From NCBI RefSeq assembly GCF_020745735.1, contig NC_083402.1, positions 7,378,001 through 7,442,000 of the forward strand: DNA of 64,000 nt, given 5' to 3'. Shown here in pieces: positions 7,640 to 43,379 of this stretch; the first letter of the stretch is position 1; each line of letters opens with the position of its first letter. The translations under genes were made by a program, and so were the position numbers. A model generated the notes under the pieces. The model did not search any database. It had not been told where the DNA came from and saw nothing but the letters and a program-made list of their open reading frames with translations. This DNA is from Hemiscyllium ocellatum (Eukaryota).

Positions 7640-8420
7640 TCTATTTAAATGTCTGCCATTGCTCATCCTACTTTCTACTTTGCCATTTGCAATCCTACTT
7701 TAGACAACTCGTTTTCGTCATGCCTCTGTAATTGTCTTTATTTAAGTTGAGAACATTGCTTTTAGAACAAATTGTTCTCCCTCAAAATGATTTGAAATTC
7801 TGAAATGTTGTGATTGTTATGCCCTACAAAAACCTCAATTGCAGGAACTCTTCATAATTGTCTCTTATTACACATTACTAAATCTAAAACAATCTATTAC
7901 CGGGCAGATTCTACAACAAGCTCTCTAAGAAACAATCCCTTCTGCATTTTACACATTCATTTTCCTTGTTAGCTTTGCCTATCTAATTTGTTGAGTGAAT
8001 ATGGAGATTAAAATCACCAATGACAATTGTCATGCCTTTGCTGCATACCTCCACTATTTCCTAGTTTATAATTTAACCTGCAGTGAGGCAACTTTCCTAC
8101 AACTCCCACCAGTAATTTCTTATCCTTGATATCCATTATTTCCAACCAAACCAATTCCACATCATGATCTGTTGTATTAATATTGCTACTCATATCACTC
8201 TGATACCATCCTTTATTAACAATGCAACCCCACCTCCTTTCAATTCATGTCAATTTTTCCAGATAGATAAAGAATCCAAAGGTCTAATGTTTTCCATATC
8301 ATTTCTTAGCCTGGTGCCAAATTTTACTCCTATACACCCTCCTGTGTACATTCTCTGCCCTTTCCCATTAAACTTTATCATTCATCTCTTCACTAATCTG
8401 TGCTCTCTGCTCCCTCATTT
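7640..8420 (-). mobile_element. Degenerate CR1 APE-region fragment
   Basis: Reverse complement resembles the CR1 ORF2 N-terminus seen elsewhere in the window. Confidence 0.55.
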
Positions 8421-9514
8421 CTTTTTCAATGGTTGAGAGGGAACCTGATAAGATGGAGTGCACAAATAAGATGCATAATAAAACGCGTTTTCATCAGCAC
8501 AGGGGTCAGTGACCAGGGAATATAGATTTAAGTTAAATTATTGAGGAATGTAAGAGGAGAATTGACATACATTTTAACACAGAGGTTGATAAGTGTCTGA
8601 CACACAATGACTTAAACAGCAGTTGAGTCAGAAATGCTGGTAACATTTAAGTAGTATTTACATACTTATTTGCATTTCCATTTTCCACCTCAGTTGCTTG
8701 CATCTCTGCTTTCTCATTGATGTTGGATTTTTTAACTTTCCTCCAACTGAAACCCACCTTCCACCCCCACCCCCTACACCTGCCCCATTAAATAGTTTAA
8801 AGCCCTAATAAGTTGGTAAAAAGGCAAATGGACCAAAAGCTGCATGCTGGGAGAAATAGAGTCAGATCTTTGTTGACACAGACATGATAACCCAATTGGC
8901 CTCTTCCTATGCTGTAAATGTCCTGCTGTCCATGAATCTATAATGAAAACTTGAAGGAATGAATCTTCACACTATGAAGAGTTGATTGTCACTGATTGAC
9001 AATAATTAATACTCATTCTATTGATAAACTGGCATTGAGGCTGACATAGACAAGATGTAACATTCTGTGCTGCATTTTGTTTCTATCTACCTAAGAAATG
9101 TTGCAAGTTCACATTATTCAGTCAATCTCAATGCTCAGCCAACAGCAAGGTTGTTTATGTCACGTAGCAAATTTTGCCTGTGAATGTTCTGTATTTGTGG
9201 TATTGTTTGTAAGAAGTAACAATAAATACCTCTAGTCTCATTATTGTCTGAAACCTGGGTGTGCCTGCAGTATTCTGTACCTTCCCTCACTCTCTGGAAG
9301 GTCACATGAGTTCCTGTGGGCTCTGTCCCACTTGGAGCTCTGTTGGGAACATTTTGGCAACTTCAAGTAAGCGATGTTATCTTGCTTTCATTTTTTTTAA
9401 AGTCAATGATTTCTCCCTGATGAAGAAGCCACATTGAAGGAAAAGGCACATCTGCTGAACAGCAGCAGCTTTGGGAACTAAATACCAGACAGTGGTTGGG
9501 TCATCAACAAGGAG

Positions 9515-9709
9515 TCAAGAGTGCGGTTCTGGAAAAGCACAGCAAGTCAGGCAGCATCCAAGGAACAGGAGAATTGATGTTTTGGGCAAGAGCCTTCATA
9601 AGGAATGAAACATTGATTCTCCTGATGCCCGGATGCTACCTGACCTGCTGTGCTTTCCCAGCACCCACCCTCGACTCTAATCTTGAGCATCTACATCCTT
9701 ACTTCCTCT
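9515..9709. mobile_element. Head-to-head PLE-derived mini-element (hairpin) with a 14-bp TSD
   Basis: Arms are reverse complements (gaaaagcacagcaagtcaggcagcatcc / ggatgctacctgacctgctgtgctttccc); flanks tcatcaacaaggag (9501-9514) and tcatcaacgaggag (9710-9723). Confidence 0.75.
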
Positions 9710-9742
9710 TCATCAACGAGGAGGCAATTTGAAAGATGAGTA

Positions 9743-9802
9743 TTAGAACTGAACCGAGACTGACAGGAGGACTGCAGAAAGACAAACATAGAAAGATTTC
9801 AT
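9743..9802 (-). pseudogene. Paralogous signal-peptide exon (MKSFYVCLSAVLLSVSVQF*) that has lost its splice donor
   Basis: Reverse complement atgaaatctttctatgtttgtctttctgcagtcctcctgtcagtctcg matches the leader at 42423. The ggtcacagtaagt donor region is deleted, so the frame runs into TAA. Flanking homology spans 9375-9960 and 10883-11010. Confidence 0.78.
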
Positions 9803-9959
9803 CAGCAGGACTTTACTGTTTCACCCTCCTCGCTCAGTTCCTCTTGGCCTTTTACAGAAAAAAGACAGAAGTTACTTGACTTCCTCTGCCTGACCGAAAA
9901 ATGTTGATCAATCATCCATGAAATGGACCAAAAATACGATGTTTTGTATGGTCAGTAGG

Positions 9960-10880
9960 GAACAATGGACCTGAACACACAGATCTCTCTGTACATCAAT
10001 TTTCTCCAGGACTTTTCCATTTACTGGATAGTTTGCTCTTGAATTTAATCTTCAAAAATGCGTCACCTCACATTTATCGAGATGGAACGTCATCTGCCAT
10101 TTCTCTGCCCATTTCCCCAATCTATTTATATCCTGCTTTATTCTCTGACAGTCCCCTTCATTATCTGCTACTCCACCAACCTTGGTGTCATCTGCAAACT
10201 TGCTAATCAGGCAACTGATACATTTCTCCAAATAATTTATATATATCACAAACAATAGTGGTCCCAGCACAGATCCCTGTGGAACACCACTGGTCACATG
10301 TCTCATTTTGAGAAGCCCCCTTCCACCATTACTCTCTCTCTCCTGTTGCCCAGCCAGTTCTCTACCTATCTGGCTGGCACGCCCTGGAGCTCATGCAACT
10401 TCACCTTCTCCATCAGCCTACCATGGGGATCCTTATCAAATGCCTTACTATACAGTAAATGGAATTGCACACAATTAAGAAAGATCCTGTTGTAATCTGA
10501 GGTAACCCTCTTCGCTGTCCACTACACCTCCAATTTTGTTGTCATCTTCAAACCTACTAATTGTACCTCCTATGCTTGCATCCAAATCATTTATGTAAAT
10601 GACAAAATGTAGAGGACCCAGCACTGATCCTTGTGGCACTCCACTGGTCACAGGCCTCCAGTATGAAAAACAATCCTCCACCACCACCCTCTGCCTTCTA
10701 CCATTGAACCAGTTCTGTATCCAACTGGCTAGTTCTCCTTGTATTCCATGAGTTTTAACCTTGCTAATCAGTCTCCCAAAGTCCCAATTATTTCCTCTCT
10801 AGCTTCTCTCAGTAACTTGGGGTAGATCCCATCCAAGTCTACCTTAATGCCTTTTAGAATACCCAAAACTTCCTCCTTCT
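9960..10880 (-). mobile_element. CR1 RT fragments inserted in the paralogous promoter
   Basis: [13 protein letters not shown] and KFADDTK in - strand ORFs. Confidence 0.9.
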
Positions 10881-11061
10881 TACGCTGAGCAAATGACATA
10901 ACTGTTATAAAGTTGAAGTAACAACCACAACAACTGTTGAGAAAAGAAAATGTTGCATCAGCTTCCAATACATTTCTCAAAACCCTCAGTGTCAACATCA
11001 AACACTCCAAACGTTGGACAGCAGAGGTTTAGATACAGAGTATAGCTCCTCTACACTTCAT

Positions 11062-11345
11062 GGCCAGTACAGTGACTCAGTAGGTAACATTGCTGCTTCA
11101 CAGAACCAAGGAATTGGGTTCGAATTCACTCTTGGGTGATTGTGTGTGGGGAGTTTGGACATCCTCACTGAGCATGGATTTCCTTCAGGTGCACTGGTTT
11201 CCTCCCATTGTCCAATGCTGTGTGGATTTGGTGGATTACCAGTGGGAAATGCAACAATGGAGTAGGTACTTGGGTCTGGGTGTGATGCTCTTTGGAGGGT
11301 CAGTGTGGACTTAATGGGCCAAATGGCCTAGTTCCACATTCTAGG
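11062..11345 (+). mobile_element. Old HE1/V-SINE copy
   Basis: Similar to the copies at 20504 and 47800 (ggtttcctccc core, ggagggtcagtgtggact 3' part). Confidence 0.7.
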
Positions 11346-11379
11346 GACACTATTATTTCCATGATGCACTGTCCCCATC

Positions 11380-11760
11380 AAACACCCCCAGGGCAGGAAT
11401 AGCACCAGATCAGATAGAGAGTTTGACTTGATACAGATCCCTCTGTATTGTTGAATGGAGAACACAGATGGAGGCTGTTGCCTGGATTTTGCACATCCAG
11501 TGCCTCCAACCATTTCTTGATTCACATGAAGTGAATCAAATTGGCTGAAGACTGATATCTGTGATGCTGGGGACCACTGGATGAGGCTGAGATGGATCAT
11601 CCATTCAGCATGTCTGACCAGACATTGCTGTAAAAGCTTTAGCCTTGTCTTTTGTAATGATGTGCTGGGCTCTTCCATCATTGAACCTTGGGATATTTGT
11701 AGAGATACCTTCTCCTAAGAGTTATTTAATTGTCCACCATCATTTACAGTGGCAGGACTG
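11380..11760 (-). mobile_element. LINE fragment (L2/CR1-like) preceded by a short shark repeat
   Basis: Related sequence recurs at about 51960-52400. Confidence 0.5.
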
Positions 11761-11769
11761 CGGAGAATA

Positions 11770-13150: not shown

Positions 13151-13159
13151 CCGCTGACA

Positions 13160-26522: not shown

Positions 26523-26697
26523 GATGGAAAGGGAAGGCACAGGAGCAGAAAATGGTAAGTGACTAATTGTTCTTCAGCATATTTTATATACTATTCCATT
26601 TTGTGATGAATCTGAATGTTTTAAAGTAATCCTCCGCAATAACAGACAATTCCCCTTCAGTTCAAGCAGCAAGACTCTCTGAGTTACTTATTCAGAC
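26523..26697 (+). pseudogene. Degenerate paralog of the - strand tail exons (partial exon 26523-26554, intron, exon about 26667-26697)
   Basis: acaggagcagaaaatg/gtaagt versus acagcaatagaaaag/gtaacc; gcaagactctctgagttacttattcagac/gtgagt versus gcaagatcctcctggctgcagattcagaagaga/gcgagt. TGA in the homologous frame. Confidence 0.6.
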
Positions 26698-27094
26698 GTG
26701 AGTGAATCAGTCTTTCCTTTCAACACCAGTTCTAATTTCCTCTCCCTTTCTCCCTGACACTCTATCTGCTCCCAGGCTCCAGAATCCCACTCTCCATGTA
26801 CTGGACAGAACCAGTTGGGGCTGTGTGATATAGTTCCTTGTTCCTGACATCTCTAATGCTGTTCAGTCAGATCATTGGGGTTTGATCCCATGACTTCCAA
26901 GCCCCAACTCCTCATCCCAGTGCTCTAGTATTGTTCTGCCAGCCTGCCCATCTTCATTGGGGTGTTCATTTTCTGCACCAATTAGAAGGCAAACAGATTC
27001 TCCCCTATCCTATTAGATGGTACTTGACTGTCGGTCAACAGGTTGTCTCTCCCAGTGTGTTTATCCCGGTCAGGAAGAAAATGAGGGAAAAGAG

Positions 27095-27590
27095 GATGTG
27101 AGGGCATCATGGTAAATTGGCTGGATGGTTAATCCAGAGAACCAGGAAATGTTGAGGGGAACTGGATTTGAATCATATTGCAGGGGGTGGTGGAATTTAT
27201 ATACAAAACAATCTGGAATTAAGAGTCTAATAGTGACTACAAACTCATTCCCACTTGTCAGGAAATACCCATCTGGGTCAGTAATGTCCTTATGGACAGT
27301 AAATGCCATCCTTACAGGGACCGGCCTCCATGTGACACCTGATGAATTCCTGATGAAAGGCTTTTGCCTGCTTTTCAGATGCTGCCTGACCTGCTGTGCT
27401 TTTCCAGCACCACTCTAATCTTGACTCTAATCTCCAGCATCTGTAGTACCCACTTCTGCCGACTTATAACTCCAGACCCATCACCGTATGGTTGGGTTTT
27501 GGTTGCTCTCTGGGCAACTATGGATGGGGAAGAAATGCTGGCCTGGCCAGTGATACACCCATCCTATCAATAAATAAAATAAATGTACAA
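27095..27590 (+). mobile_element. Deu-domain SINE (SacSINE1-like) with a PLE-derived insert at about 27340-27465
   Basis: ccatctgggtcagtaatgtcct core, gggcaactatggatggg...tgctggcctggccagtga tail. Confidence 0.72.
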
Positions 27591-27825
27591 TTGTTGAGGT
27601 AAATGTTCCCCTTTCAGGTAATTCCCCTCAAACTGAAATTATAATTCTGAGCTGCTCTGATTTCTGTTTATTACAGACTTACAAAAATATTATTCCAGGT
27701 ATCACCGACCTGGAGAAGGAAGAACAAGGATCAGCATTCTGATCAGCACAAGAATCATCTCAGCAGGTCTTGTGAACAGAGAACCATTGACACTGTTTTA
27801 TGTGGTTTCCCCCTCCCCAAAAGAA

Positions 27826-29182
27826 AATTATAGGCCAATTAGCCTAACCTCGGTTGTTGGTAAAATTGTACAATCCATCATTAAAGATGAGATTTCTAAA
27901 TTCTTGGAAGAGCAGAGTCTGATTAGAACAAGTCAACATGGATTTAGTAAGGGGAGGTTGTGTCTGACAAACCTGTTGGAATGCTTTGAAGAGGTGACAA
28001 GTAGGTTAGACCAGGGAAACCCAGTGGATGTGGTCTATCTAGACTTCCAAAAGGCCTTTGATAAGGTGTTGAGCAAGGTGAGGGCCCATGGTGTTCGAGG
28101 TGAGCTACTGGTATTGATTGAGGATTTGCTGTCTGACAGAAGGCAGAGAGTTGGGATAAGAGGTTCTTTTTCGGAATGGCAGCCGGTGACAAGCGGTGTC
28201 CTGCAGGGTTCAGTGTTGGGGCTGCAGCTGTTCATATTATATATTAATGATCTGGATGAAGGGACCGGGGGCATTCTAGCGAAGTTTGCCGATGATACGA
28301 AGTTAGGTAGACAGGCAGATAGTACTGAGGAAGTGGAGAGGTTGCAGAAGGATCTAGACAGTTTGGGAGAGTAGTCCAGGAAATAGCTGATGGAATTCAA
28401 CGTGAGCAAATGCGAGGTCTTGCATTTTGTAAAAAAAGAATACAAGCATGGACTACGTTCTAAACAGTGAGAAAATTCGTAAAGCCAAAATACAAAGGGA
28501 CCTGGGAGTGCTAGTCAAGGATTCTCTAAAGATAAACATGCAGGTTGAGTCTGTGATTAAGAAAGCGAATGCAATGTTGTCATTTATCTCAAGAGGGTTG
28601 GAATATAAAAGCACCGTTGTGCTACTGAGACTTTATAAAGCTCTGGTTAGACCCCATTTGCAGTATTATGTCCAGTTTTGACCCCCAGACCTCAGGAAGA
28701 ACATACTGGCACTGGAATGTGTCCAGCAGAGATTCACACGGATGATCCCTGGAATGGTTGGTCTAGCATACGAGGAATAGCTGAGGATCCTGGGATTGTA
28801 TTCATTGGAGTTTAGAAGATTAAGGGGAGATTTAAAAGAAACTTACAAGATAATACATGGCTTGGAAAGATGGACACTAGGAAATTGTTTCCATTAGGCG
28901 AGGAGACTACGACCCGTGGACACAGCCTTAGAATTAGAGGGGGTCAATTCAGAACAGAAATGTGGAGACATTTCTTCAGCCAGAGAGTGGTGGGCCTTGG
29001 AATTCATTGCCGTAGAGTGCAGTGGAGGCTGGGATGCTAAATGTCTTCAAGACAGAGATTGATAAGTTCTTAATGTCACAAGGAATTAAGTGCTACAGGG
29101 AGAGTGCGGGTAAGTGGAGTTGAAATGCCAATCAGCCATGATTGAATGGTGGAATGGACTTGATGGACCTTTCACTCAAAAA
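27826..29182 (+). mobile_element. 5'-truncated CR1 (RT plus 3' UTR)
   Basis: NYRPISLTSVVGK, YLDFQKAFDKV, KFADDTK. Confidence 0.93.
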
Positions 29183-29580
29183 NNNNNNNNNNNNNNNNNN
29201 NNNNNNNNNNNNNNNNNNNNNNNNNNNNNNNNNNNNNNNNNNNNNNNNNNNNNNNNNNNNNNNNNNNNNNNNNNNNNNNNNNNNNNNNNNNNNNNNNNNN
29301 NNNNNNNNNNNNNNNNNNNNNNNNNNNNNNNNNNNNNNNNNNNNNNNNNNNNNNNNNNNNNNNNNNNNNNNNNNNNNNNNNNNNNNNNNNNNNNNNNNNN
29401 NNNNNNNNNNNNNNNNNNNNNNNNNNNNNNNNNNNNNNNNNNNNNNNNNNNNNNNNNNNNNNNNNNNNNNNNNNNNNNNNNNNNNNNNNNNNNNNNNNNN
29501 NNNNNNNNNNNNNNNNNNNNNNNNNNNNNNNNNNNNNNNNNNNNNNNNNNNNNNNNNNNNNNNNNNNNNNNNNNNNNNNN
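29183..29580. other. Assembly gap (N)
   Basis: Run of N. Confidence 1.
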
Positions 29581-29761
29581 GTGTTTGTGGGCTGGCAGAG
29601 ACAGAATTACAGGTCAGGGTGGACAGGGGGTGCCTGGCACGCAACAGTGTGAGACAAAGAGACACCAAGAGACTCGGGTGAGAGAATGCAAGATAAAGAG
29701 AGACCAAGTGTCTTGAGCAAGGGACAGTGTGAAAACAAAGAGACAAGGGAGACCCTAAAGC

Positions 29762-30998
29762 ATGAAGAAGTAACAAAGAGGTTAGATGAGGGCAGAGCTG
29801 TAGATGTGATCTATATGGACTTCAGTAAGGCATTCGACAGGGGTCCCCATGAGAGACTGGTTAGCAAGGTGAGATCTCATGGAATACAGGGAGAACTAGC
29901 CATTTGGATTCAGAACTGACTCAATGGTCGAAGACAGAGGGTGGTGGTGGGGGGTTGTTTTTTAGACTGGAGGCCTGTGACCAGTGGAGTGCCACAAGGA
30001 TCGGTGCTGGGTCCACTACGTTTTGTCATTTACATAAATGATTTGGATGCGAACATAAGAGGTACAGTTGGTAAGTGTGTAGATGACACCAAAACTGGAG
30101 GTGCAGTGGACAGTGAAGAAGGTTACCTCAGATTATAACAGGATCTTGACCAGATGGGCAATGGGCTGAGAAGTGGCAAATGGAGTTTAATTCAGATAAA
30201 TGCGAGGTGCTGCATTTTGCGAAAGAAGATCTTAGCAGGATTTATACACTTAATGGTAAGGTCCTAGGGAGTGTTGCTGAACAAAGGGACCTTGAAGTGC
30301 AGGTTCATAGCTCCTTGAAAGTGGAGTTGCAGGTAGATAAGATGGTGAAGGAGCGTTTAGTATGATTTCATTTATTGGTCAGAGTATTGCGTACAGCAGT
30401 TGGGAGGACATGTTGCAGCTGTACAGGACATTGGTTTGGCCACTGTTGGAATATTGCATGCAATTCTGGTCTCCTTCCTATTGGAAGGCTGCTGTGAAAC
30501 TTGAAAGGATTCAGAAAAGATTTACAAGGATGTTGCCAGCATTGAAGGATTTGAGCTACAGGGAGAGATCTGAACAGGCTGGGGCTGTTTCCCCTGGAGC
30601 GTCGGAGGCTGAGGGGTGACCTTATAGTGGTTTACAAAATTATGAGGGACATGGATAGGATAAATAGACAAAGTCTTTTCCCTGGGGTTGGGGAGTCCAG
30701 AACTAGAGATCACATGTTTAAGGTGAGAGAGGAAAGATATAAAAGAGACCTAAGGGATGACTTTTTCAGACAGATTTTGGTACGTGTATGAAATGAGCTG
30801 CCAGGGTAAGTGGTGGAAGCTGGTACAATTGCCACATTTAAAAGGCATTTGGATGGGTATATGAATAGGAAGAGTTTGGTGGGAAATGGGCCGGGTGCTG
30901 GCAGGTGGGAATAGATTGGGTTGGGATATCTGTTCGGCATGGACGGATTGGAACGAAGGGTCTGTTTCCATGCTGTACATCTGTATGACTCTGACTCT
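29762..30998 (+). mobile_element. 5'-truncated CR1
   Basis: [22 protein letters not shown], 3' tail gactctgactct. Confidence 0.93.
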
Positions 30999-31350
30999 AA
31001 ATGGAATCAGACACAGCCGGGAGAGATAATGGCAGGATAGAACTGAAAAGAAAAACCCAGTGGGTTCCAGATCAGTCTGTGTTTGAGAAAAATAAAACCT
31101 TAACTAAAGATATGACAGAGGACTGATGGAATAGGGAGGGAACTGAATCAGAACAGGAAGCTTGGTGGCTGGGTCAAAGAAAGAGAAAGGGAAACAATGG
31201 GTTAATCAGCTTTGTGGCTCTGTTTAAACAGAATACAAAAAAGGAACAGAATTAAGCTGAAATAGCTGCAGTGTTATAAAGTCTGGTTGAAGATTTGTAG
31301 CTCGGGTGTCCGTTGTTGTGGTTCTGTTCGCCGAGCTGGAAGTTTTTGCT

Positions 31351-31390
31351 GCAAACGTTTCGTTCCCTGGCTAGGGAACATCATCAGTGC
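31351..31390 (-). ncRNA. Minimal hammerhead ribozyme motif (left arm copy)
   Basis: Exact reverse complement of 33984-34023. Confidence 0.75.
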
Positions 31391-32640
31391 TATTGGAGCC
31401 TCCTGTGAAGCGCTGCTTTGATGTTTCTTCCGGTATTTATAGTGGTTTGTTCTTGCCGCTTCCGGGTGTCAGTTTCAGCTGTAGTAGTTTGTATGTGGGG
31501 TCCAGGTTGATGTGTCTGTTGGTGGATCTTCTTGCCATTTCCGGGTGTCAGTTTCAGCTGTAGTGGTTTGTATATGGGGTCCAGGTCTATGTGTCTGTTA
31601 ATGGAGTTTGTGGATGAATGCCATGCCTCTAGGAATTCCCTGGCTGTTCTCTGTCTGGCTTGTCCTATGATGGTAGTGTTTTCCCAGTCAAATTCATGTT
31701 CCTGGTTGTCTGAGTGTATGGCTACTAGGGATAGCTGGTCGTGTCGTTTTGTGGCTAGCTGATGTTCGTGGATGCGGATTGTTAGCTGTCTTCCTATTTG
31801 TCCTATATAGTGTTTTGTGCAGTCCTTGCATGGTATTTTGTAAACTACGTTAGTTTGGCTCGTGCTGGCTATCGGGTCCTTTGTTCTAGTGAGTTGTTGT
31901 CTGAGTGTGGAAGTTGGCTTATGTGCTGTTATGAGTCCTAAGGGTCGCAGTAGTCTGGCTGTCAGTTCTGAGACGCTCCTGACGTATGGTAGTGTGGCTA
32001 GTCCTTTTGGTTGTGGCATGTCCTCGTTCCGTGGTCTATCTCTTAGGCATCTGGTGATAAAGTTGCGTGGGTATCCGTTTTTGGCGAATACCTTGTATAG
32101 GTGTTCCTCTTCCTCTTTTCGCAGTTCTGGTGTACTGCAGTGTGTTGTGGCTCTTTTGAATAGTGTCCTGATGCAGCTTCGTTTGTGTGTGTTGGGGTGG
32201 TTACTTTCATAGTTTAGGACTTGGTCTGTGTGTGTTGGTTTCCTGTGTACCCTTGTGGTGAATTCTCCGTTGGGTGTTCTCTCTACTAACACATCTAGGA
32301 ATGGGAGTTGGCTATCCTTTTCCTCTTCTCTCGTGAATCGTATTCCTGTGAGTGTGGCGTTGATGATTCGGTGTGTTTTTTCTATTTCTGTGTTTTTGAT
32401 GATTACAAAGGTGTCATCGACGTATCTGATCCAGAGTTTGGGTTGGATTTGTGGTATGGCTGTATGTTCTAGCCTTTGCATAACTGCCTCTGCTATGAGT
32501 CCCGAGATTGGTGATCCCATGGGTGTTCCGTTGATTTGTTCGTATATCTGATTGTTGAATGTAAAGTGTGTGGTGAGGCACAGGTCTAGTAGTTTAAGTA
32601 TGCCGTCCTTGTTGATAGGTTCGGCCTCCTGTGTTCTGTT
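31390..32640 (-). CDS. PLE RT C-terminal half plus GIY-YIG endonuclease (left arm, open, 5'-truncated)
   Basis: GTPMGSPIS, WIRYVDDTF, NVVYKIPCKDC...YIGQ; the listed ORF is 31390-32520. Confidence 0.88.
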   Translation of the reverse strand, partial: NRTQEAEPINKDGILKLLDLCLTTHFTFNNQIYEQINGTPMGSPISGLIAEAVMQRLEHTAIPQIQPKLWIRYVDDTFVIIKNTEIEKTHRIINATLTGIRFTREEEKDSQLPFLDVLVERTPNGEFTTRVHRKPTHTDQVLNYESNHPNTHKRSCIRTLFKRATTHCSTPELRKEEEEHLYKVFAKNGYPRNFITRCLRDRPRNEDMPQPKGLATLPYVRSVSELTARLLRPLGLITAHKPTSTLRQQLTRTKDPIASTSQTNVVYKIPCKDCTKHYIGQIGRQLTIRIHEHQLATKRHDQLSLVAIHSDNQEHEFDWENTTIIGQARQRTAREFLEAWHSSTNSINRHIDLDPIYKPLQLKLTPGNGKKIHQQTHQPGPHIQTTTAETDTRKRQEQTTINTGRNIKAALHRRLQ

Positions 32641-33984
32641 ATGACAATTGACAAAACCCTAGCCAGAGAAACAATAGCCAACCTACTGAACATACATAAC
32701 AGAACACAGGAGGCCGAACCTATCAACAAGGACGGCATACTTAAACTACTAGACCTGTGCCTCACCACACACTTTACATTCAACAATCAGATATACGAAC
32801 AAATCAACGGAACACCCATGGGATCACCAATCTCGGGACTCATAGCAGAGGCAGTTATGCAAAGGTTAGAACATACAGCCCTATCACAAATCCAACCCAA
32901 ACTCTGGATCAGATACGTCGATGACACCTTTGTAATCATCAAAAACACAGAAATAGAAAAAACACACCGAATCATCAACGCCACACTCACAGGAATACAA
33001 TTCACCAGAGAAGAGGAAAAGGATAGCCAACTCCCATTCCTAGACGTGTTAGTAGAGAGAACACCCAACGGAGAATTCACCACAAGGGTACACAGGAAAC
33101 CAACACACACAGACCAAGTCCTAAACTATGAAAGTAACCACCCCAACACACACAAACGAAGCTGCATCAGGACACTATTCAAAAGAGCCACAACACACTG
33201 CAGTACACCAGAACTGCGAAAAGAGGAAGAGGAACACCTATACAAGGTATTCGCCAAAAACGGATACCCACGCAACTTTATCACCAGATGCCTAAGAGAT
33301 AGACCACGGAACGAGGACATGCCACAACCAAAAGGACTAGCCACACTACCATACGTCAGGAGCGTCTCAGAACTGACAGCCAGACTACTGCGACCCTTAG
33401 GACTCATAACAGCACACAAGCCAACTTCCACACTCAGACAACAACTCACTAGAACAAAGGACCCGATATCTGCAGACCTCATTTTTTACTCAAAGGACCC
33501 GATAGCCAGCACGAGCCAAACTAACGTAGTTTACAAAATACCATGCAAGGACTGCACAAAACACTATATAGGACAAACAGGAAGACAGCTAACAATCCGC
33601 ATCCACGAACATCAGCTAGCCACAAAACGACGCGACCAGCTATCCCTCGTAGCCATACACTCAGACAACCAGGAACATGAATTTGACTGGGAAAACACTA
33701 CCATCATAGGACAAGCCAGACAGAGAACAGCCAGGGAATTCCTAGAGGCATGGCATTCATCCACAAACTCCACTAACAGACACATAGACCTGGACCCCAT
33801 ATACAAACCACTACAGCTGAAACTGACACCCGGAAACGGCAAGAAGATCCACCAACAGACACATCAACCTGGACCCCACATACAAACTACTACAGCTGAA
33901 ACTGACACCCGGAAGCGGCAAGAACAAACTACTATAAATACCGGAAGAAACATCAAAGCAGCGCTTCACAGGAGGCTCCAATAG
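32641..33984 (+). CDS. PLE RT C-terminal half plus GIY-YIG endonuclease (right arm, 447 aa, 5'-truncated)
   Basis: YEQINGTPMGSPIS, RYVDD, LPFLDV, VVYKIPC...YIGQTGR; short RT-EN linker. Confidence 0.9.
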   Translation: MTIDKTLARETIANLLNIHNRTQEAEPINKDGILKLLDLCLTTHFTFNNQIYEQINGTPMGSPISGLIAEAVMQRLEHTALSQIQPKLWIRYVDDTFVIIKNTEIEKTHRIINATLTGIQFTREEEKDSQLPFLDVLVERTPNGEFTTRVHRKPTHTDQVLNYESNHPNTHKRSCIRTLFKRATTHCSTPELRKEEEEHLYKVFAKNGYPRNFITRCLRDRPRNEDMPQPKGLATLPYVRSVSELTARLLRPLGLITAHKPTSTLRQQLTRTKDPISADLIFYSKDPIASTSQTNVVYKIPCKDCTKHYIGQTGRQLTIRIHEHQLATKRRDQLSLVAIHSDNQEHEFDWENTTIIGQARQRTAREFLEAWHSSTNSTNRHIDLDPIYKPLQLKLTPGNGKKIHQQTHQPGPHIQTTTAETDTRKRQEQTTINTGRNIKAALHRRLQ

Positions 33985-34023
33985 CACTGATGATGTTCCC
34001 TAGCCAGGGAACGAAACGTTTGC
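33984..34023 (+). ncRNA. Minimal hammerhead ribozyme motif in the PLE terminal repeat
   Basis: GCA-CUGAUGA-u-GUUCCC-uagcca-GGGAAC-GAAA-CG-UU-UGC: core, helix II and a 3-bp helix I. Confidence 0.75.
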
Positions 34024-34859
34024 AGCAAAAACTTCCAGCTCGGCGAACAGAACCACAACAACAGTGTTATACGTGAAAAAGTGAGAGGGGAAGCATGAAT
34101 TTCTGCACCGGGCTGGTTTTCTGAACTTTGTCGAAGGGTTAACTCTTTGTGGTTTGGTTTGAATGCACGAGTGTTGTTTGCAAAATGTTGTCTTGTGCAA
34201 TTTATGTGTTTTTGTTTCTTTGAACTTTAGATCTGGGGATATGTTGAAGTTAGTTTGCATTTTGGAAATGTTTGGTGATTTGGAAGCATGACATATGCCA
34301 TATGTGAGCCAGTCTGGTTAATATAATGTCCGTTTAAGAAACTATCAGTGGTTGTGCATGGCAGAAGTCTGTGACAAAATGTTGATTTAAGAAGTTGGTT
34401 CGTCAAGCTTGGTAAAAGCTTTTGGAATTGGCTCCGTGCTGTGTTTGGACTTGGGTAAAATTTTCATTCCAGAAATTACCATGTTTGGGATTGCAGTTTC
34501 TTGCCAGAATGAACTTCCAAACACTGTTCTAACACATGAGTGAATCTTTAATTCCTGATGATAAGATTTGCTCATTGTAAAGGTACTTTGATGTGAGACA
34601 ATCAAAACAAAATATGAAATGTGGAATCTTGGAAATACAATTCCCTTTGGTCAAAATTCTGATGGTTTGTTCTAAAATCTGATAAAGCTGATAAAATAAT
34701 TCGGAAAGGCAAATTTAACAAAAGAGGTGGGTTTTTTTTTCTAAAGTATAACATATATTTTGTTGGAGGAGGAATGATGGATGATTGAATTACCTGCAAG
34801 AGCATGTGCCCCCTCCCCTTTTTCCATTGTTGAAAACTAATTAATCCATTCTGCTTCTC

Positions 34860-35035
34860 ATGGAATGGATGGATACTTCCTTTCGAAATTTTGAATCTAT
34901 GGATGATGTTATTTTATCGCTACTGGGTGAAGGGACCTGTAAATAGAGACTGGAGGACAAAAATATTAAGGAATTAACACAAGTTAAGAGAGCACTCAAT
35001 TGGGCTCGGAAGGCAGAACATCAACAAGGAGCTAG
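34860..35035 (+). pseudogene. Possible ERV gag N-terminal remnant
   Basis: MEWMDTSFRNFESMDDVILSLLGEGTCK*RLEDKNIKELTQVKRALNW, upstream of the gag-pol remnant; no diagnostic motif. Confidence 0.22.
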
Positions 35036-35620
35036 CACACAATGGCCGAGTGGTATGATCGCTGGGCTGTTCATCCAAAGACCCAGGTAAGGTTCTGGGT
35101 GCTCGGGTTTGAATCCCACCATGGCAGACAGTGGGGTTTGAATTCAATAAATATCTGGAATCAAGATTCTAATGCTGACCATGAAACCAATAAACCCATC
35201 TGGGTCATAATGTCCTTGAGGGAAGGGAACAGGCATCCTTTCCTGGTTTGGCCTACATGTGACTCCAGACCCAATGCGGTTGACTCTTAACTGCCCTCAG
35301 TAAAAACAATGGCCACAGATGCTGGAAACCAGATTTTGGATTAGTGGCACTGGAAGAGCACAGCAGTTCAGGCAGCATCCGAGGAGCAGTAAAATCAACA
35401 TTTCGGGCAAAAACCCTTCATCAGGAATACTGCCGTAGTATTCCTGATTAAGGGCTTTTGCCCGAAACATTGATTTTACCGCTCCTCGGATGCTGCCTGA
35501 AATGCTGTGCTCTTTCAGCACCACTAATCCAGAAAGTTAACTGCCCTCTGGGCAATTAGGGATGGACAATCAATGCTGGCCCTGTCAGTGATGCTCTCAT
35601 TCCCTGCATGAATAAAAAAG
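35030..35620 (+). mobile_element. Deu-domain SINE (SacSINE1-like) interrupted by a hairpin mini-element
   Basis: tRNA-like head, ggcctacatgtgactccagacc core, gggcaattagggatgg tail. Confidence 0.8.
35299..35536. mobile_element. Head-to-head hammerhead-bearing mini-element with a 12-bp TSD
   Basis: TTAACTGCCCTC at 35287-35298 and 35537-35548; arms meet at caggaatac-tgccgta-gtattcctg; each arm carries CUGAU(G/U)A-GGGC/U...GCCC-GAAA. Confidence 0.85.
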
Positions 35621-35624
35621 AGAA

Positions 35625-37056
35625 GTTGTGACAGGGAATACACACAGACAGGGGGCCTGCCCGAAGCAGCGGAAGGAAAGAGAGTGATTTGTGTGCAATA
35701 ACTTCACCAAGAACTGCCACAATAAGAAATGTGAGAGTAGTGGAGAATGAGGACACAACGGAGAGAACTGCTGGTTCCCCAGGGGAGGCAGGCACGGACA
35801 GGAACCAAGGCAGAATCAGGGAAACACCCAGCCAGTTGCCAATGGCAACAGCAGTGAGAGGACTGTCATACAATTTACAGCAAGAGAGCTGCAGAAACTA
35901 ATCGTGAACAGGTGATGGCTGGTGGTGCTCGGACAAATAGAAGGGGATAACCAGGTGTATATAAGCACGCTGTTAGGGGGCCGGCCGTGCAGTATGTTCA
36001 TAGGCACTGGAGCCTCTATCTGTATTACAGATTTGGATTTGCCATTATCAAATAAAAATTTAAAAGTACAGGGAGGGAGTAGTGGGATTCAACCAGCCAC
36101 TCTCAGCCAACTGCTTGAAATAAAAATAGCTGATTGTGTAATTAATTCTCCTATTTATGTGTGTAAAAATACTGAAGGTGGTGTCCTGGGGTTGGATTTA
36201 TTGGAATAAGTTGGAGCCATAATTGATGTGCGAGAGGCCAAAATGGGCTCACCAGTTTAAATTCGGAAAGACAAGGATTGCCTGCCTCCTTAAGAGTATC
36301 CGTGCTGTCACAATAGAGTGGGAATGGGATTCCGAGAACCCCGACCACAAAATGGCGATGATGTGTCCCAAATTATGAGCAACCCCCAAAACCCAGTGAA
36401 GGAGATTGGACATAACACCGACTGAAATTCCTGGGAATGTACACCCACCTGAAAGACAGTACCCCATCAGACCTGAAGCTGTTGAGGCAATTAAAGAGAA
36501 TGAGAATGGTTTGGAGAAACAGGGAATAATAAAAGAAACTTGTTCCACCACAAACACCCAGAATTGGCCAGTGAAGAAACCCGAAGGATCATACAGAATA
36601 ACGACTGACTATAGCAGTCTAAAGAAATATGCAGATAAACTGGGGCCTGGTGATGCAGATCCCAACACTATAATAAACAATATAGGGTCAGAAACCAAGA
36701 CCTTTATAATCCTAGATATAGCAAATGGGTTCTGGACTCTGCCTATAGACCCCAAACACCAATATACATTTGCCTTTACCACAGGTGACTGACAGTATAC
36801 CTGGACAAGAGTACCACAAGGGCTCCTCATTAGCTCTGCTATATTCCACCAGGCAATGGCAGATGTAATAGCAAAAGTTCCCAAAACAGAGTGTGTAAGA
36901 TTACTATAGGTTGACGATATGCTGATTGCTTCTACTACTGAGGGAAAACACTACAAGACAGGACTGAAAACGTTAAAAACCATTGTAGCTTCTGGATTAA
37001 AAATAAAACCAAAGAAAGCACAGCTCGGCAAACTGGAAGTGTCTTACATGGGACAA
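35625..37056 (+). mobile_element. pol: ERV gag C-terminus (zinc-knuckle remnants), in-frame TGA, protease and RT N-terminal half (decayed)
   Basis: HRQGAC and CESSGE*GHNGENC; TGA at 35913-35915, then FIGTGAS (DTGA site); RT PPERQYPIRPEA, WPVKKPEGSYR, LDIANGFW, QYTWTRVPQG, *VDD at 36907-36918. Confidence 0.88.
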
Positions 37057-37260
37057 AGTTAAAAATCACACAACACCAGGTTCGAGTCCAACAGGTTTAT
37101 TTGGAAGTACGAGCTTCCAGGGCGCTGCTCCTTCATCAGGTCGCTGTGGAGAGGATCATCAGGCACAGAATTTATAGCAAAAGATCATGCAACTGAAACG
37201 ATAGATTGATCAAACCTAGATTGGTGTTACAGTTTTAGGTTCATTATTATGTAAATCCCA
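37057..37260 (-). mobile_element. Neptune-type PLE terminal-repeat fragment with a degenerate hammerhead
   Basis: Same family as 57640 and 60190; reverse strand cctgatgaaggagcagcgccctggaagc. Confidence 0.7.
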
Positions 37261-37261
37261 G

Positions 37262-40200
37262 AACTCCTCTCAAAGGAAAGGAGTGACTATAAGTACTTAC
37301 CCTTCGACGCCAGCGACCTTTTAGAGTGGGAGCAGCAGCGGAGGTAAGGTGAACCAGGAAGGCTACAGCTAAGGTAAAGGAGATGTTTAACATTACTTAC
37401 CGGGAGTGACCGGTGGTGTTTTTCCTCCACGGTAGGAGTGGGAGCAGTGGGCGAAGTGACACGGACCAGAGGGGCTGCTGGGAAGGAAAGTAAGTGACCA
37501 TATATATTAGCAAGGCGGCTTGCTCCTCCTGCAGAACGTGGCAGGTGAGAGACATGACACACGTCTCCGCTGGCTACATCTGCGGGAAGTGCACCCAACT
37601 CCATCTCCGTGAAAACTGTGTTAGGGAATTGGAGCTGGAGCTGGATGAACTGCGGATCATTCGGGAGGCTGAGGGGGTAATTGAGAGGAGTTACCGGCAG
37701 TTGGTCACTCCTGAGGCTCAGGATAAGGATAGATGGGTTACATTCAGGGGGAGGAAAGGGGACAGACAGACAGTGCAGAGATCCTCTGGGGACATTCCCC
37801 TCAGCAATAAGTATATCGTTTCAGATACTGCTGGGGGACGGATGACCGACCAGAGGAAAGCCATAGTGGTCAGTTCTCTGGCACTGAGCCTGACACTGTG
37901 GCCCAGAAGGGAAGGGGGCAGAATAGAAAAGCACTCGTGGTGGGGAAGTCGATAGGGGAATTGACAGGAGATTTTGTGGTGAGGATCGGGATTCCCGGAA
38001 GGTATGGTGCCTCCCTGGTGCCAGGGTCCGGGATGTCTCCGATCGGGTGTATACGATTCTGAAAGGGCAGGGCGAACAACCAGAAATCATGTTACATGTT
38101 GGCACCAATGACTTAGCCAGGAAAAGGATTGAGGATATAAAAAGTGATTTCAGGGAGTTAGGGTGGAAGCTGCAGAGCAGGACGAACAGAGTCGTGTTCT
38201 CAGGTTTACTACTGGTGCCACGAATTAGTGAGGTGAGGAACAGGGAGCGGGCGCAGTTTAACACCTGGCTGTGCAGCTGGTGTAGGAGAGAGGGCTTCAG
38301 ATATGTAGATAATTGGGATGTCTTCTGGGGAAGGTAGGACCTGTACATGAAGGACGGGTTGCACCTGAACTGGAAGGGGACCAATGTCCTGGGTGGGAGG
38401 TTTGCTCGAGTGGTTCAGGAGGGTTTAAACTAGTATGGCAGGGGGGTGGGAACCTGAGCTATATACCGGTGCTGAGAGTTGATGGAGATGAGGCAATAGC
38501 AAGAGGTAGCGCAGCCAGTGGGAAGGAATTTCCTGGGAAAGAACCAAAGGATTGCTTTAATGCAAGGAGTATCAGGAATAAAAGTGATGAGCTTAGAGCA
38601 TGGATCAGTACCTGGTGCTATGATGTTGTGGCCATAACAGAGATGTGAGTTTCTCAGGGGCAGGAATGGTTGCTGGAAGTTCCAGGGTTTAGAACATTTA
38701 AAAAGAATATGGAAGGAGGAAAAAGATGAGGGGGTGTAGCACTGCTAATCAGAGAGGGTATCACAGCTACAGAAGCTACCATTATCAAGGAGGGTCTGCC
38801 TACTGAGTCAGTATGGGTGGAAATTAGGAACAGTGAGGGAGCAGTCACCTCATTAGGGGTTTACTACAGGCCCCCCAATAGCAGCAGGGAGATTGAAGAA
38901 AGCATCGGTCGGCAGACTTTGGAAAAGTGTGAATGTAGTAGGGTTGTTGTAATGGGTGACTTTAACTTTCCAAATATTGATTGGAACCTCCTTCGAGCAG
39001 AAGATTTGAATGGAGCTGTTTTTGTAAGGTGTGTTCAGGAGGGTTTCCTAACTCAGTACGTTGACAGGCCCACGAGAGGAGAGGCCATTTTGGATTTGGT
39101 GCTCGGCAATGAGCCGGGGCAGGTGTCAGATCTTGTGGTGGGAGACCATTTTGGTGATAGTGACTACAACTGCCTCACATTCTACATAGCTATGGAGAAG
39201 GAGAGAAGCATACACAATGGGAGGATATTTAATTGGGGAAAAGGAAACTACGATGCGATCAGATGTGAGTTGGGAAGCATGGACCGGAGCAATTGTTCCA
39301 TGGAAAGAGCACTATAGACATGTGGAGAATGTTTAAGGAACAGTTGTTACGAGTGATGCAAAAATGTGTTCCTCTGAGACAGGCAAGAAGGGGTAAGATA
39401 AAGGAACCTTGGATGACGAGAGCAGAGGCGCTTCTCATCAAAAGAAAGAAGGCAGCTTATGTCAGGTGGAAGAAGCTAGGGCCTTGCTCAGCTCTAGAGG
39501 ATTACAGGCAGGCAAGGAAGGAGCTCAAAAATGGTCTGAGGAGAGCTATGAGGAGGCACGAAAAAGGCTTGGCAGGAAGGATTAGGGAGAATCCAAAGGC
39601 ATTTTACTCGTATGTGAGGAATAAGAGAATGATCAACGAAAGAGTAGGGCTGATCAGGGATAGCATAGGGAACTTGTGTATAGAGTCTGAGGATGTGGGG
39701 AAGCCCTAAATGAGTTTTATGCTTCTGTCTTTACTAAAGAAAAGGACCAAATAGTGAATGAAACCATTGAGGAGCAGGTACGCATGCTGGAATGGATAGA
39801 GATTGAGGAAGCTGATGTGCTGAAAATTTTGACAAACATTAAGATTGACAAGTCGCCAGGGCCAGACCAGATTTTTCCTTGGCTGCTTTGGGAAGCGAGA
39901 AATGTGATTGCTTCACCACTTGCGAAGATCTTTGCATCCTTGCTCTCCACCAGAGTCATACCTGAGGATTGGAGAGAGGCAAATGTAATTCCTTTCTTCA
40001 AGAAAGGAAATAGGGAAATCCCCGGCAATTACAGACCAGTCAGTCTCATGTCTGTCGTCTGCAAGGTGTGAGAAAGGATTCTGAGGGATAGGATTTATGA
40101 CCAACTGGAAGATCATGGCTTGATTAAATGCAGTCAGCGCAGATTTGTGAGGGACAAGTCATGCCTCACAAATCTTATTGAGTTCTTTGAAGATGTTACT

Positions 40201-41385
40201 AGACAAGTTGATGAGGTTCGATTGGTAAATGTGGTGTATATGGACTTCAGTAAGGCATTTGATAAGGTTCCCCATGGTAGGCTCATTCAGAAGGTCAGGA
40301 GGAATGGGATACAGGGAAACTTAGCTGTCTGGATACAGAATTGGCTGGTCAACAGAAGACAGTGAGTGGTAGTGGAAGGAAAGTATTCTGCCTGGAGGTG
40401 AGCGGTGTTCCAGAGGGCTCTGTTCTTGGGCCTCTACTCTTTGTAATTTTTAACAATGACTTGGGTAAGGAGATTGAAGGATGGGTTAACAAGTTTGCAG
40501 ACTACACAAAGGTTGGAGGTGTTGTTGACAGTATAGAGAACTGTTGTAGGCGCAGTGGGACATTGACAGGATGCAGAGATGGGCTGAGAGGTGGCAGATG
40601 GAGTTCAACCTTGATAAATGTGAAGTGATGCATTTTGGAAGGTTGAACTTGAAAGTTGAGTACAGGATTAAAGACAGGATGCTTAGCTGTGTGGAGAAAC
40701 AGCGGGTACCTGGTGTGCAGGTACATAGATCCCTTAAAATTGCCACTCAAGTGAACAGGGTTGTTAAGAAAGCATATGGTGTTTTGGCTTTCATTAACAG
40801 GGGGATTGAGATTAAGAGCCGTGAGATCTTGTTGCAGCTCTATAAAACTTTGGTTAGACTGCACTTGGAATACTGCGTCCAGTTCTGATTGCCCTCTTAT
40901 AGGAAAGATGTGGATGCTTTGGAGAGGGTTCAGAGGAGGTTTACCAGGGTGTTGCCTGGAATGGAGGGCTTATCTTACAAAGAGAGGTTGACTGAGCTTG
41001 GACTTTTTTCATTGGAAAAAAGGAGGAAGAGAGGGGACCTAATTGAGGTCTACAAGATAATGAGAGGCATAGATAGAGTTGATAGCCAGAGACTTTTTCC
41101 CAGAGCAGAAACTGTTAACGCGAGGGGTCATAGTTTTAAGCTGTTTGGCGGAAAGTATAGAGGGGATGTCAGAGGCGTGTTCTTTATGCAGAGAGTTGTG
41201 AGAGCATGGAATGCATTGCCAGCAGTGGGTGTGGAAGCGAGGTCATTGGGGATATTTAAGAGAGTACTGGACATGCATATGGTCACAGACATTTGGGGGT
41301 TCGTACATTAGGTTTACCTTATGTGAGGATCAATGGTTGGCACAACATCGTGGGCTGAAGGGCCTGTTCTGTGCTGTACTGTTTT
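37262..41385 (+). mobile_element. Full-length decayed CR1: 5' UTR, ORF1 (Zn finger, coiled coil, esterase; about 37494-38432), ORF2 (about 38540-41290), 3' UTR
   Basis: CSSC...CGKC, ELELELDELR, LHVGTND, DGLHLN; MGDFNFPNIDW, NYRPVSL, MDFSKAFDKVPH, KFADYTK. Confidence 0.95.
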
Positions 41386-41389
41386 TAAA

Positions 41390-41910
41390 AAATCATATTC
41401 TTGAGATAACTTACAGTTTTAGAGTAAAGGTGACATCTTAGTTCAGTTAATGCATTAAAGGTGTGAGGTTAGAGTCTGTCTGTATTCCAATTTTGAGTCA
41501 GACTGTTTCTATTTCCAAAGTAGGAATTTACAAAATGTTACATGGATCAGCTGCCTGCATTGACTGCCTGCAGGTTGTGGATTTTTTGACAAAATAGAAT
41601 GTCCCTGTACTTTTGCAAATTCACATTCACCCAACATAAATGCGTGTGAGCATGTGAGGGACAGAGAGAGTGTGTTTGTATGTGAGTGAGAGAGCGAGAG
41701 AATGTGAGTGTTTGCACTTGAGTGTGTATGTGTGGATGTGAATGTGAGTGCTTGAGAGTGTGTGTTTGCGTGTGTGCGTACTTGGTAGTGTGTGTGAGTG
41801 TGACGGTGTATAAGCCTGTGAGAGGATTTGTGCTTGGGTGTGAGTGTGGGGAGTGTATCTGTGTGTGTCTGAGAGAGAGCGGGTGTATGAGAAAGGGCCC
41901 TTTGGTCATC
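41390..41910 (-). mobile_element. Neptune-like PLE 3' region with a GT-rich tract
   Basis: Resembles 57950-58400 in sequence (gcaaattcacattcacccaa) and in the GT-rich tract. Confidence 0.5.
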
Positions 41911-42339
41911 TCCCTGCACTAACTGCTTTTTACTTGAATAAACGTTGGCCACGTGCCTGGATCCTGTCTGCCTCCTGAGTCTTTGTACCCATTCGGGGGG
42001 ACAATGGAAAGGTGCTTTCCTTCTGGTTAATTTCAATTTTAAAAAGTAGGAGTTTTACTCTGGATCCAACCCTGAGCTGTGGCTGTCCTGGGAGTGTTTG
42101 ATGGAGACAGTGCTGAAAGAGCTTTACTCTGTCTCTAACACTGTCCTGCCCCAGCTCACAGAGTGTTTGATGCTGAAGCTGATGATTTTGAGAATTGTGT
42201 TGGAAGCTTTTTCTCAACAGTTGCTGTGGTTGGTGCCTCTGTTTTATAATAGCTTTGTCATTCTCTCAGCTCCTACTGACCGTACACAGACTTCCCATTT
42301 GTTGTTCGTATCGTGTATGATTGCCTCACATTTATTTGG

Positions 42340-42360
42340 CAGGAAGTCAAGTAACTTCTG
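42340..42360 (+). promoter_or_regulatory. Conserved proximal promoter motif with an ETS core (CAGGAAGT)
   Basis: GGAAGTCAAGTAACTTCTG (42342-42360) is identical in the paralog (9865-9883, minus) while the flanks have diverged; about 60-80 nt upstream of the ATG. Confidence 0.55.
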
Positions 42361-42422
42361 TATTTTTCTGTAAAAGGACAAGAGTAAGTGAGTGAGAAGG
42401 ATGAAATGGTGAAGTATTAACG

Positions 42423-42483
42423 ATGAGGTCTCTCTATGTTTGTCTTTCTGCAGTCCTGCTGTCAGTCTCAGTACGGGGTCACA
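42423..42483 (+). CDS. Signal-peptide exon MRSLYVCLSAVLLSVSVRGH(T) of a Siglec-15-like receptor
   Basis: ATG, hydrophobic core, CA/GTAAGT donor in phase 1 matching the V1 exon; a conserved paralog exists in the window. Confidence 0.8.
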
Positions 42484-43379
42484 GTAAGTACTTTCTAATA
42501 CTGACCTTTCAAATCCACTTTGTTCATCATGGAATTGCCTCCTCCTTGATGGTCTGTTTGCTGTCTGGTATTTAGTTCCCAAACTGTTACTGCTCAGCAC
42601 GATGTGCCTTTTCCTTCACTGCGGTTTCTTCATCAGGGAGAAATCATTTGTTTTATCAAAAATGAAAACAGTGACAATTGACTGTTCCTAGCGTGATGAT
42701 TTATTCCTTCATGTTTTCCTTGTAGATTCATCAACCTTAGACATTTACAGTGTAGAAGGAGGCCATTTTGGGTGATCATGTCTGTATCAGTCAACGATGA
42801 TCTCACTCTACTTCTCCCATTTTGCAGCTCTCCATCTAAAAGCCTTCTTAACCAACTTATTGAGGGCTTTAATGTAATTAGTGGGGTGGAGACCGCGGTG
42901 GGAGGTGGGATTCAGTTGGAGGGAATTTTGAAAATCAGAAAGGGATGCTGTTCAGAGGGTCAATGTGGATTTGTTGGGTCAAATCTCCTGTTTTCACACT
43001 GCAGGGATTCGGAAAAATAGAAATGACAGAGCAGAGGTGCAGGCTACTGAAGAGGCAAATGGAAATGCCAATGAACATCGAAGTACAAATGTTACCAGTG
43101 TTTATAACTCAACTTCCCTTTCAGGCAGTGAGTTCCAGACTCTTATTAACCTCTACATGAGGAAGAATCTGTTAAGTCTCCTCTCACTCTCTATCTCCGA
43201 CCTTAAATCTATCTTTCCTGTTAACTGACCCCAGTATGAATGAAGAAAGGACCTTCTTCCCTATCCTATCTGAGCACTCATAATTATCCATATTTTATTA
43301 GTTTTCCTGTCAACCAATCAAAAAAAATGAGAAAGCAAATAATGCAGGGTAGTGAAGAGGTTAATGATAATCAAAGTGT

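Follow-up and report, generated by a model that had tools for sequence, protein, structure and literature searches.

Opposed receptor-gene junction units at a probable strand switch in a Siglec-15-like cluster of Hemiscyllium ocellatum

A 64,000-nucleotide stretch of the 4-Gb genome of the shark Hemiscyllium ocellatum (C2:7378001-7442000, where C2 is contig NC_083402.1; the window, hereafter) lies within what appears from its sequence to be a cluster, over 1.5 Mb long and full of segmental duplications, of Siglec-15-like receptor genes with two V domains and with tails that carry immunoreceptor tyrosine-based inhibitory motifs (ITIMs). The window contains two units, each composed of a receptor tail, an intergenic spacer and the leader of the next gene. 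Probably, these are back-to-back junction units of different subfamilies that meet at a junction, J1, at the edge of an inverted island holding one gene. The general reading, a strand switch between paralogous junction units, carries good confidence; the specific mechanism is considerably more doubtful. Coordinates above 64,000 extend the window numbering rightward into fetched flanking sequence.

Ten of the eleven leaders at 7.09-7.66 Mb are on the minus strand, and the exception is the right leader of the window. Plus-strand exons of the V1 type (the other type being V2) occur in this interval at 7428468-7468959 only, with minus-strand exons on either side. The leader, V1, V2 and tail of the gene concerned are all on the plus strand, an arrangement that depends on the scaffold orientation of four contigs. 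J1 (23.5-26.1 kb) would therefore mark the left edge of a one-gene, plus-strand island of roughly 90 kb. From left to right, the two arms and J1 contain the following features:

7709..9748, minus strand: start of intron 1 of the left gene, homologous to 42486-45551, with a genome-wide hairpin (9512-9677) inside
9749..9802, minus strand: left leader exon (MKSFYVCLSAVLLSVSVQ...), in which a 17-base deletion takes out the splice donor
9803..11048, minus strand: left promoter block in two parts, 9803-9980 and 10884-11048, with a long interspersed nuclear element (LINE) fragment, 9981-10880, between them
14227..14887, minus strand: 3' flank of the left tail, holding a 93-base block (14511-14603)
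14887..17214, minus strand: LINE between the left tail and its 3' flank, from blastn of the window against itself
17576..18086, minus strand: orphan ITIM tail, T_b, with exons A, B and C
17576-17638, minus strand: T_b exon C (VTCAAV)
about 17899-17938, minus strand: T_b exon B, predicted
18033-18086, minus strand: T_b exon A (..CTYASIVF..)
18087..23478, minus strand: intron upstream of T_b, 87-90% colinear with 101870-107016, the intron that precedes the tail in the intact plus-strand gene
23567..25569, minus strand: 5'-truncated LINE at J1; the recent duplicon common to the window and C2:8.14 and 8.21 Mb stops within it, at 24020
25570..26129, plus strand: fragment of a second LINE at J1, 5'-to-5' with the first, its 3' end abutting the truncated T'
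26130..27821, plus strand: orphan tail-type block, T', truncated on its upstream side, with a 93-base block (27708-27802) and no recognisable ITIM exon
27810..29182, plus strand: 3' part of a LINE, running to an assembly gap
29581..42118, plus strand: transposon-filled intergenic stretch, 94-95% colinear with C2:7839107-7848820
42119..42485, plus strand: right promoter and leader; the leader exon, 42423-42485, is intact (MRSLYVCLSAVLLSVSVRGHS, then a GTAAGT donor)
42486..45551, plus strand: first part of intron 1 in the plus-strand gene, the homologue of 7709-9748, with a dispersed repeat at about 43705-44930

Both tails that face J1 have counterparts at the far edge of the island. The left tail block (14227-23478) is mirrored by 109153-101870, inverted and colinear at 76-90%; the right tail block (26130-27821) is mirrored by 118669-116792, inverted at 88-93%. 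All four blocks fit the order A - B(inv) - X(inv) - A(inv) - B, and the mirrored orphan tails suggest an inversion that duplicated its own breakpoints. Neither J1 tail has a head: no V exon was found between 18086 and 42423, as an earlier note on this DNA had said of the centre, and a hydropathy scan of 18086-26200 detected no membrane-spanning exon. That note had also taken the centre to hold only repeats, which does not stand: 18.1-23.5 kb is the upstream intron of T_b, and pure LINE sequence is restricted to 23567-26130. The two LINE fragments, both 5'-truncated, belong to different families and lie 5'-to-5' exactly between the truncated tails, with their 3' ends outward. This pair could represent a breakpoint sealed by retrotransposition, or two later insertions; no target-site duplications are evident at the J1 LINE.

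Inverted pairs were sought by blastn of the window against itself, which identified nine segments, all colinear and all on opposite strands:

7709-8293 and 45551-44971: 74.5% identity
8342-8718 and 43407-43022: 68%
8726-8997 and 42936-42666: 75%
9383-9492 and 42670-42561: 87%
9753-9959 and 42472-42272: 77%
10884-11048 and 42270-42119: 72%
14511-14603 and 27802-27708 (the middle block, 93 bases): 78%, E 2e-14
17648-17723 and 27667-27592 (tail, 76 bases): 80%
17775-17986 and 26842-26620 (tail, 227 alignment positions): 65.6%, E 1e-3

The earlier note had described three blocks in reversed orientation and in the same order. Two of these, the promoter/leader/intron block and the 93-base block, are confirmed, and the former extends 1.7 kb further left than had been proposed (7709-11048 against 45551-42119, 68-87%). 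The third, the tail match, is weak (76 + 227 bases). Divergence is uneven along the unit: the leader region is 73.7% identical and the tail introns are 65-80% identical over about 300 bases, whereas the tail exons cannot be aligned. The left ITIM exons (18033-18086 and 17576-17638) have no alignable counterpart in the right tail, and the alignment between the two tails is limited to intron and the small middle exon. The right block nevertheless aligns at 70.7% over 477 bases with a further tail in this family, and is therefore a distant tail homologue.

How closely the arms are related was judged against paralogues, in a comparison that included six leader blocks (four leader subfamilies) and ten tail blocks. 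The left and right promoter/leader/intron blocks are 73.7% identical over 1073 positions (MAFFT), whereas other subfamily pairs are 61-69% identical. Thus, the left and right leader subfamilies are relatively near each other; the arms as wholes, however, belong to different lineages. A pairwise palindromic duplication is at odds with these values: arm against arm the identity is 65-87% and patchy, and copies outside the window reach 94-99%.

Whole-genome searches, conducted block by block, found about 20 copies of each block and none outside the receptor cluster: C2 at 7.08-8.63 Mb and at 4.7 Mb, and the unplaced contigs C330, C342, C623, and C894. The pieces that occur genome-wide are embedded elements only: the hairpin at 9512-9677, an element at about 27335-27580, and pieces of LINEs and of sequence resembling a short interspersed nuclear element (SINE). 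A dispersed transposon or repeat family, the high-copy explanation that the earlier note had raised against itself, is thereby ruled out; block copies are confined to the cluster and the four unplaced contigs. About 45 V1 exons are distributed over C2 at 7.08-8.63 Mb, at 4.72 and 9.46 Mb (one), and over unplaced contigs. Tails and leaders recur across the cluster as same-strand pairs, at 7.125/7.120, 7.184/7.176, 7.226/7.218, 7.583/7.571, 7.856/7.838, and 8.124/8.120 Mb. The unit is therefore the ordinary junction between consecutive tandem genes.

The left arm has two close relatives. Window positions 1-24020, together with at least 5.7 kb further left, match C2:8135906-8165000 and C2:8204901-8235000 in reverse at 94-98%; these inverted copies sit 0.75-0.83 Mb away. 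Both part from the window at 24020, within the LINE, where they turn SINE-like and the window stays in LINE register. The copies at 8.14 and 8.21 Mb share 2.4 kb more with each other. This nested sharing suggests that a window-like source was copied once and that the copy was then duplicated again. The leader deletion that removes the splice donor is common to the copies at 8.15 and 8.22 Mb, and the hairpin at 9512-9677 is likewise common to both. Downstream of the left leader, a V2 exon about 4 kb left of the window (C2:7373782-7374134, minus strand) contains an in-frame stop; its counterpart at C2:8233166 is an open frame. This stop adds to the dead leader, so that two separate lesions mark the left gene as a pseudogene.

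Tail T_b is itself altered. The family sequence VTYAAV...KTH-stop reads VTCAAV in exon C, in which the ITIM tyrosine has become cysteine (TGC) and the stop codon has changed from TAG to GAG, extending the frame. The cysteine is common to T_b and the 8.14-Mb copy, and the 8.21-Mb copy retains both the tyrosine and the stop. This codon pattern conflicts with the overall identities, by which the two distant copies are nearer each other, and hints at gene conversion. In the whole-genome search, T_b was 86% identical to at least ten further tails. The 93-base block in its 3' flank is present also at 27708-27802 and beside both tails beyond the window.

The right arm (26130-45600) has a full-length colinear paralogue at 7.835-7.857 Mb, 94-96% identical. 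Its promoter/leader/intron segment is 94-96% identical to C2:7835444-7839107, and 98-99% identical to C2:7653009-7656522 and C2:8270804-8274310. Block T' falls into identity tiers: 93-94% to six copies, 85% to seven, and 70-74% to four. In the window its upstream limit is 26130, whereas other T' copies run on upstream. For ITIM exons in T' copies, tblastn gave chance-level matches only. At least 17 copies, in three identity tiers, have the ITIM-less form. A minisatellite within T' (26340-26484) consists of 2.7 copies of a 53-base unit; this unit is similar to the intron immediately ahead of the final tail exon and looks like a small exon with splice sites. In the intergenic stretch, a fold-back Penelope-like insertion (31277-34062) has no counterpart in the paralogue at C2:7.839-7.849 Mb (94-95%); dozens of copies across the genome match it at 96-99%, and it is therefore young.

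These relationships delimit what can be said of the origin of the two arms. Homologous tail-intergenic-leader units do lie in opposite orientation in a receptor cluster, each with its own transposon insertions, as originally described. An inversion within the cluster, also part of that description, is the likely cause; the view of the two arms as twin products is not retained, since each has 94-99% relatives elsewhere. Nor did complementary decay take place on site. The donor deletion is present in the two distant copies and the ITIM-less tail in at least 17; such features, being common to relatives, were inherited by the subfamily and did not arise at this locus.

The favoured reading begins with a regular minus-strand receptor array, in which a single inversion would have duplicated both breakpoint regions to give the order A - B(inv) - X(inv) - A(inv) - B. 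To the left of J1, this would place T_b and 5.4 kb of its intron, then the dead leader of the next minus-strand gene; to the right, the truncated and ITIM-less T', then a spacer filled with transposons, then the plus-strand gene with its intact leader and its V exons. One breakpoint-duplicating event would thereby leave both J1 tails headless, each with an intact, gene-attached partner. Insertions of LINEs and other elements, and further segmental duplications, would have come later, and one such duplication would have carried two copies of window positions 1-24020, with at least 5.7 kb leftward, to 8.14-8.23 Mb. Both orphan tails, and the left leader, would be non-functional by-products. In its most specific form, a staggered-break inversion of a single gene, with orphan tails as scars, a LINE-sealed junction, and flanking inverted repeats of 1.7-7 kb that could permit the segment to flip again through recombination, the proposal is tentative.

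Two other mechanisms were rejected. Plain cut-and-paste inversion of a regular array fails on logic, because it predicts one tail of each kind and not two. Nonallelic homologous recombination between the J1 LINE fragments fails as well: the fragments are about 70% alike, and before any inversion they would have been direct repeats.

Several observations weigh against the favoured reading. T_b is equally distant (86%) from the tail of the plus-strand gene and from about nine other tails; because it is no nearer that tail, the mirror pairs are not established as sisters. The plus-strand tail and spacer, to 113303, are 94-95% colinear with a complete unit at 7.571-7.583 Mb, a likeness that obliges a simple breakpoint-duplication model to invoke later conversion or duplication. 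The far edge is more complex than the model, with a 1-kb inverted pair at 97940-98936 and 113313-114361. The remaining points concern the assembly. Three gaps split the plus-strand gene into four contigs; the 2-kb LINE at J1 is unbridged by short-read contigs, with a summed contig word depth of 10^5-10^7; and three other loci (C2:7.76 Mb, C342, and C330) carry 100%-identical copies of far-edge sequence. With such gaps and identical copies, assembly error is possible.

The assembly gaps, which have no strand, are the following; the first two lie inside the window:

29183-29580
58817-58997
96478-96677

The first of these has the 3' end of a LINE on its left; on its right comes unrelated sequence and then another LINE, a different one, truncated at its 5' end. 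No gene or reading frame extends across this gap, and the flanking sequence gives no proof of continuity. However, a paralogue, C2:7839107-7856863, matches both flanks colinearly at 94-95% with order and orientation unchanged, which supports the join. J1 and the far edge each lie within one assembled contig. Moreover, short-read contigs from two studies match 22800-23589 and 25540-25843 exactly or with one difference.

Could the whole arrangement be artefactual, through a mis-join in the J1 LINE, misoriented small contigs between gaps, or haplotype copies placed as paralogues? The distribution of the plus-strand gene over four contigs and three gaps would allow it, as would the unbridged, high-depth J1 LINE (10^5-10^7) and the 100% identity shared over 4.5-4.7 kb by loci at C2:7.49 Mb, C2:7.76 Mb, C342, and C330. 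It is nonetheless very unlikely. Both J1 and the far edge are internal to contigs, the unique edges are reproduced in the runs of two studies, and a 94-95% paralogue shows the two sides of the first gap in the assembled order and orientation; further, the window tracks the distant copies at 94-98% to their last LINE base and then continues in the register of the LINE family. This cluster is a mosaic of recent duplications whose edges, at 24020 and at about 42100, are sharp, which is a setting for another scenario: a module of roughly 90 kb (truncated T', spacer, whole gene and tail) copied from another part of the cluster and inserted in reverse into the upstream intron of T_b. A similar module is present, inverted, at C2:7.755-7.857 Mb, and T_b has no special likeness to the tail of the plus-strand gene. 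But insertion would require that the T' of the next minus-strand gene had previously lain directly upstream of T_b, as two tandem tails, and would leave unexplained why both tail kinds are doubled in exact mirror positions. In addition, T' at 7.856 Mb is untruncated, and so is neither a copy nor the direct source of the truncated T' in the window. Module insertion is therefore unlikely.

The earlier note had itself proposed a single, old, head-to-head duplication of one tail-intergenic-leader unit, with complementary decay in place. The three blocks are indeed reversed and in the same order, the left and right leaders form the nearest pair among the four subfamilies aligned (73.7% against 61-69%), and the intron piece 7709-8293 matches right-type copies only. 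These points must be set against the 94-99% relatives that both arms have elsewhere, and against the left tail, which is 86% identical to at least ten tails and yet matches the right block over 76 + 227 bases only. The loss of the leader donor in two distant copies, and the ITIM-less tail in at least 17 copies spread over three identity tiers, likewise speak against decay in place. Given these shared features, any such duplication would predate most growth of the family and would be inseparable from ordinary paralogy; as an account of this locus it is very unlikely. A strand switch between junction units of different subfamilies, at the edge of an inverted island, thus remains the favoured reading.

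The plus-strand gene on the right of J1 contributes two further features to the window:

50468..50863, plus strand: V1 exon, a Siglec-15-like V-set domain, with Pfam V-set and Protein Data Bank (PDB) matches
60475..60828, plus strand: V2 exon, a V-set domain, with a Pfam V-set match

The Pfam V-set domain was detected in both exons (E 3e-13 and 1e-16). The nearest solved structure for V1 is human Siglec-15 (PDB 7zoz; 125 residues, E 4e-14), with the ..YxCRVE.. motif aligned; V2 is nearest to pIgR, CD276, and TIM domains, and then to Siglec-15. Along C2, the gene comprises a leader (7420423), V1 (7428468), V2 (7438475), two more V1 (7444009 and 7450196), a second V2 (7457913), two broken V exons, and finally ITIM tail exons (7485017-7485786). 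Between C2:7420423 and 7485786, then, a single leader and a single ITIM tail flank seven V-type exons in 65 kb, with three assembly gaps. The ITIM sequence VTYAAV, of the form V/I/L/S-x-Y-x-x-V/I/L, was identified in the tail of this gene and in that of the 8.21-Mb copy; T' lacks it. A hydropathy scan for the membrane exon yielded one weak candidate near 100810, without clear splice sites. The 1-kb inverted pair at the far edge (C2:7475940-7476936 and C2:7491313-7492361, 90% identical) brackets the tail region of the gene. V1 exons with 100% identity are found elsewhere, at C2:7647744 (minus strand) and C2:8279178 (plus strand).

Other stretches in the cluster are equally alike. Segments of 4.5-4.7 kb at C342:15653-20329, C330:81910-86586, C2:7754136-7758812, and C2:7493292-7497968 show 100.000% identity, and thus occupy two places in C2 (one inverted) and two unplaced contigs; a further copy, at C2:4.70 Mb, is 99.6% identical. 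C2:7487500-7492000 and its copies are likewise among the 100%-identical stretches. These may be either very recent duplications or redundant haplotype assembly, which are indistinguishable here.

The junction, then, is a real but fairly ordinary feature of a duplication-rich receptor cluster, and its arms are ordinary family members. The larger subject is the family: a large, apparently undescribed set of shark receptors (no paper on shark Siglec-15-like clusters was found in the literature) that is being rearranged: segmental duplications are nested in one another, and at least one strand flip of gene size has left orphan tails and dead leaders behind. For annotation, gene models should incorporate neither the ITIM tail at 17576-18086 nor the leader at 9749-9802, and gene counts for the family should not be trusted before long-read validation of the region. 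If true, breakpoint duplication here would provide a clear case, in a vertebrate, of a mechanism known chiefly from flies, of specialist interest and unsurprising.

In Drosophila, inversions are flanked by inverted duplications of their breakpoint regions, as explained by a staggered-break model (Ranz et al. 2007, PMC1885836). The island resembles such cases in its block order and in all four orientations, in duplicates that are 86-93% identical, and in leftover copies that are decayed or truncated. It differs in that the duplicated pieces in Drosophila were ancestrally single-copy, whereas those considered here come from families of about 15-20 members, so that sisterhood of the mirror pairs is not demonstrated. 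The pieces would also be larger, at several kb, and the direction of change is without outgroup support.

True palindromes and fold-back inverted duplications likewise place homologous units head to head around a short spacer. The arms described here, however, are 65-87% alike in patches, belong to different subfamilies, and have much closer copies elsewhere.

The vertebrate immune-receptor clusters that contain CD33-related Siglec and KIR/LILR genes are mosaics of segmental duplications. Similar characteristics are present in the shark cluster: tandem immunoglobulin-superfamily genes, many pseudogene fragments, several tiers of identity, and duplicons in both orientations with edges inside transposons. 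Unlike those regions, it contains Siglec-15-like genes of 50-65 kb that have two V domains, with numerous additional V exons at each locus.

In Siglec-15, the transmembrane segment is charged and associates with an adaptor. The likeness of the shark genes to human Siglec-15 lies in the V1 exon, including the ..CRVE.. strand; unlike the human protein, they encode a second V-set domain and ITIM-type tail exons.

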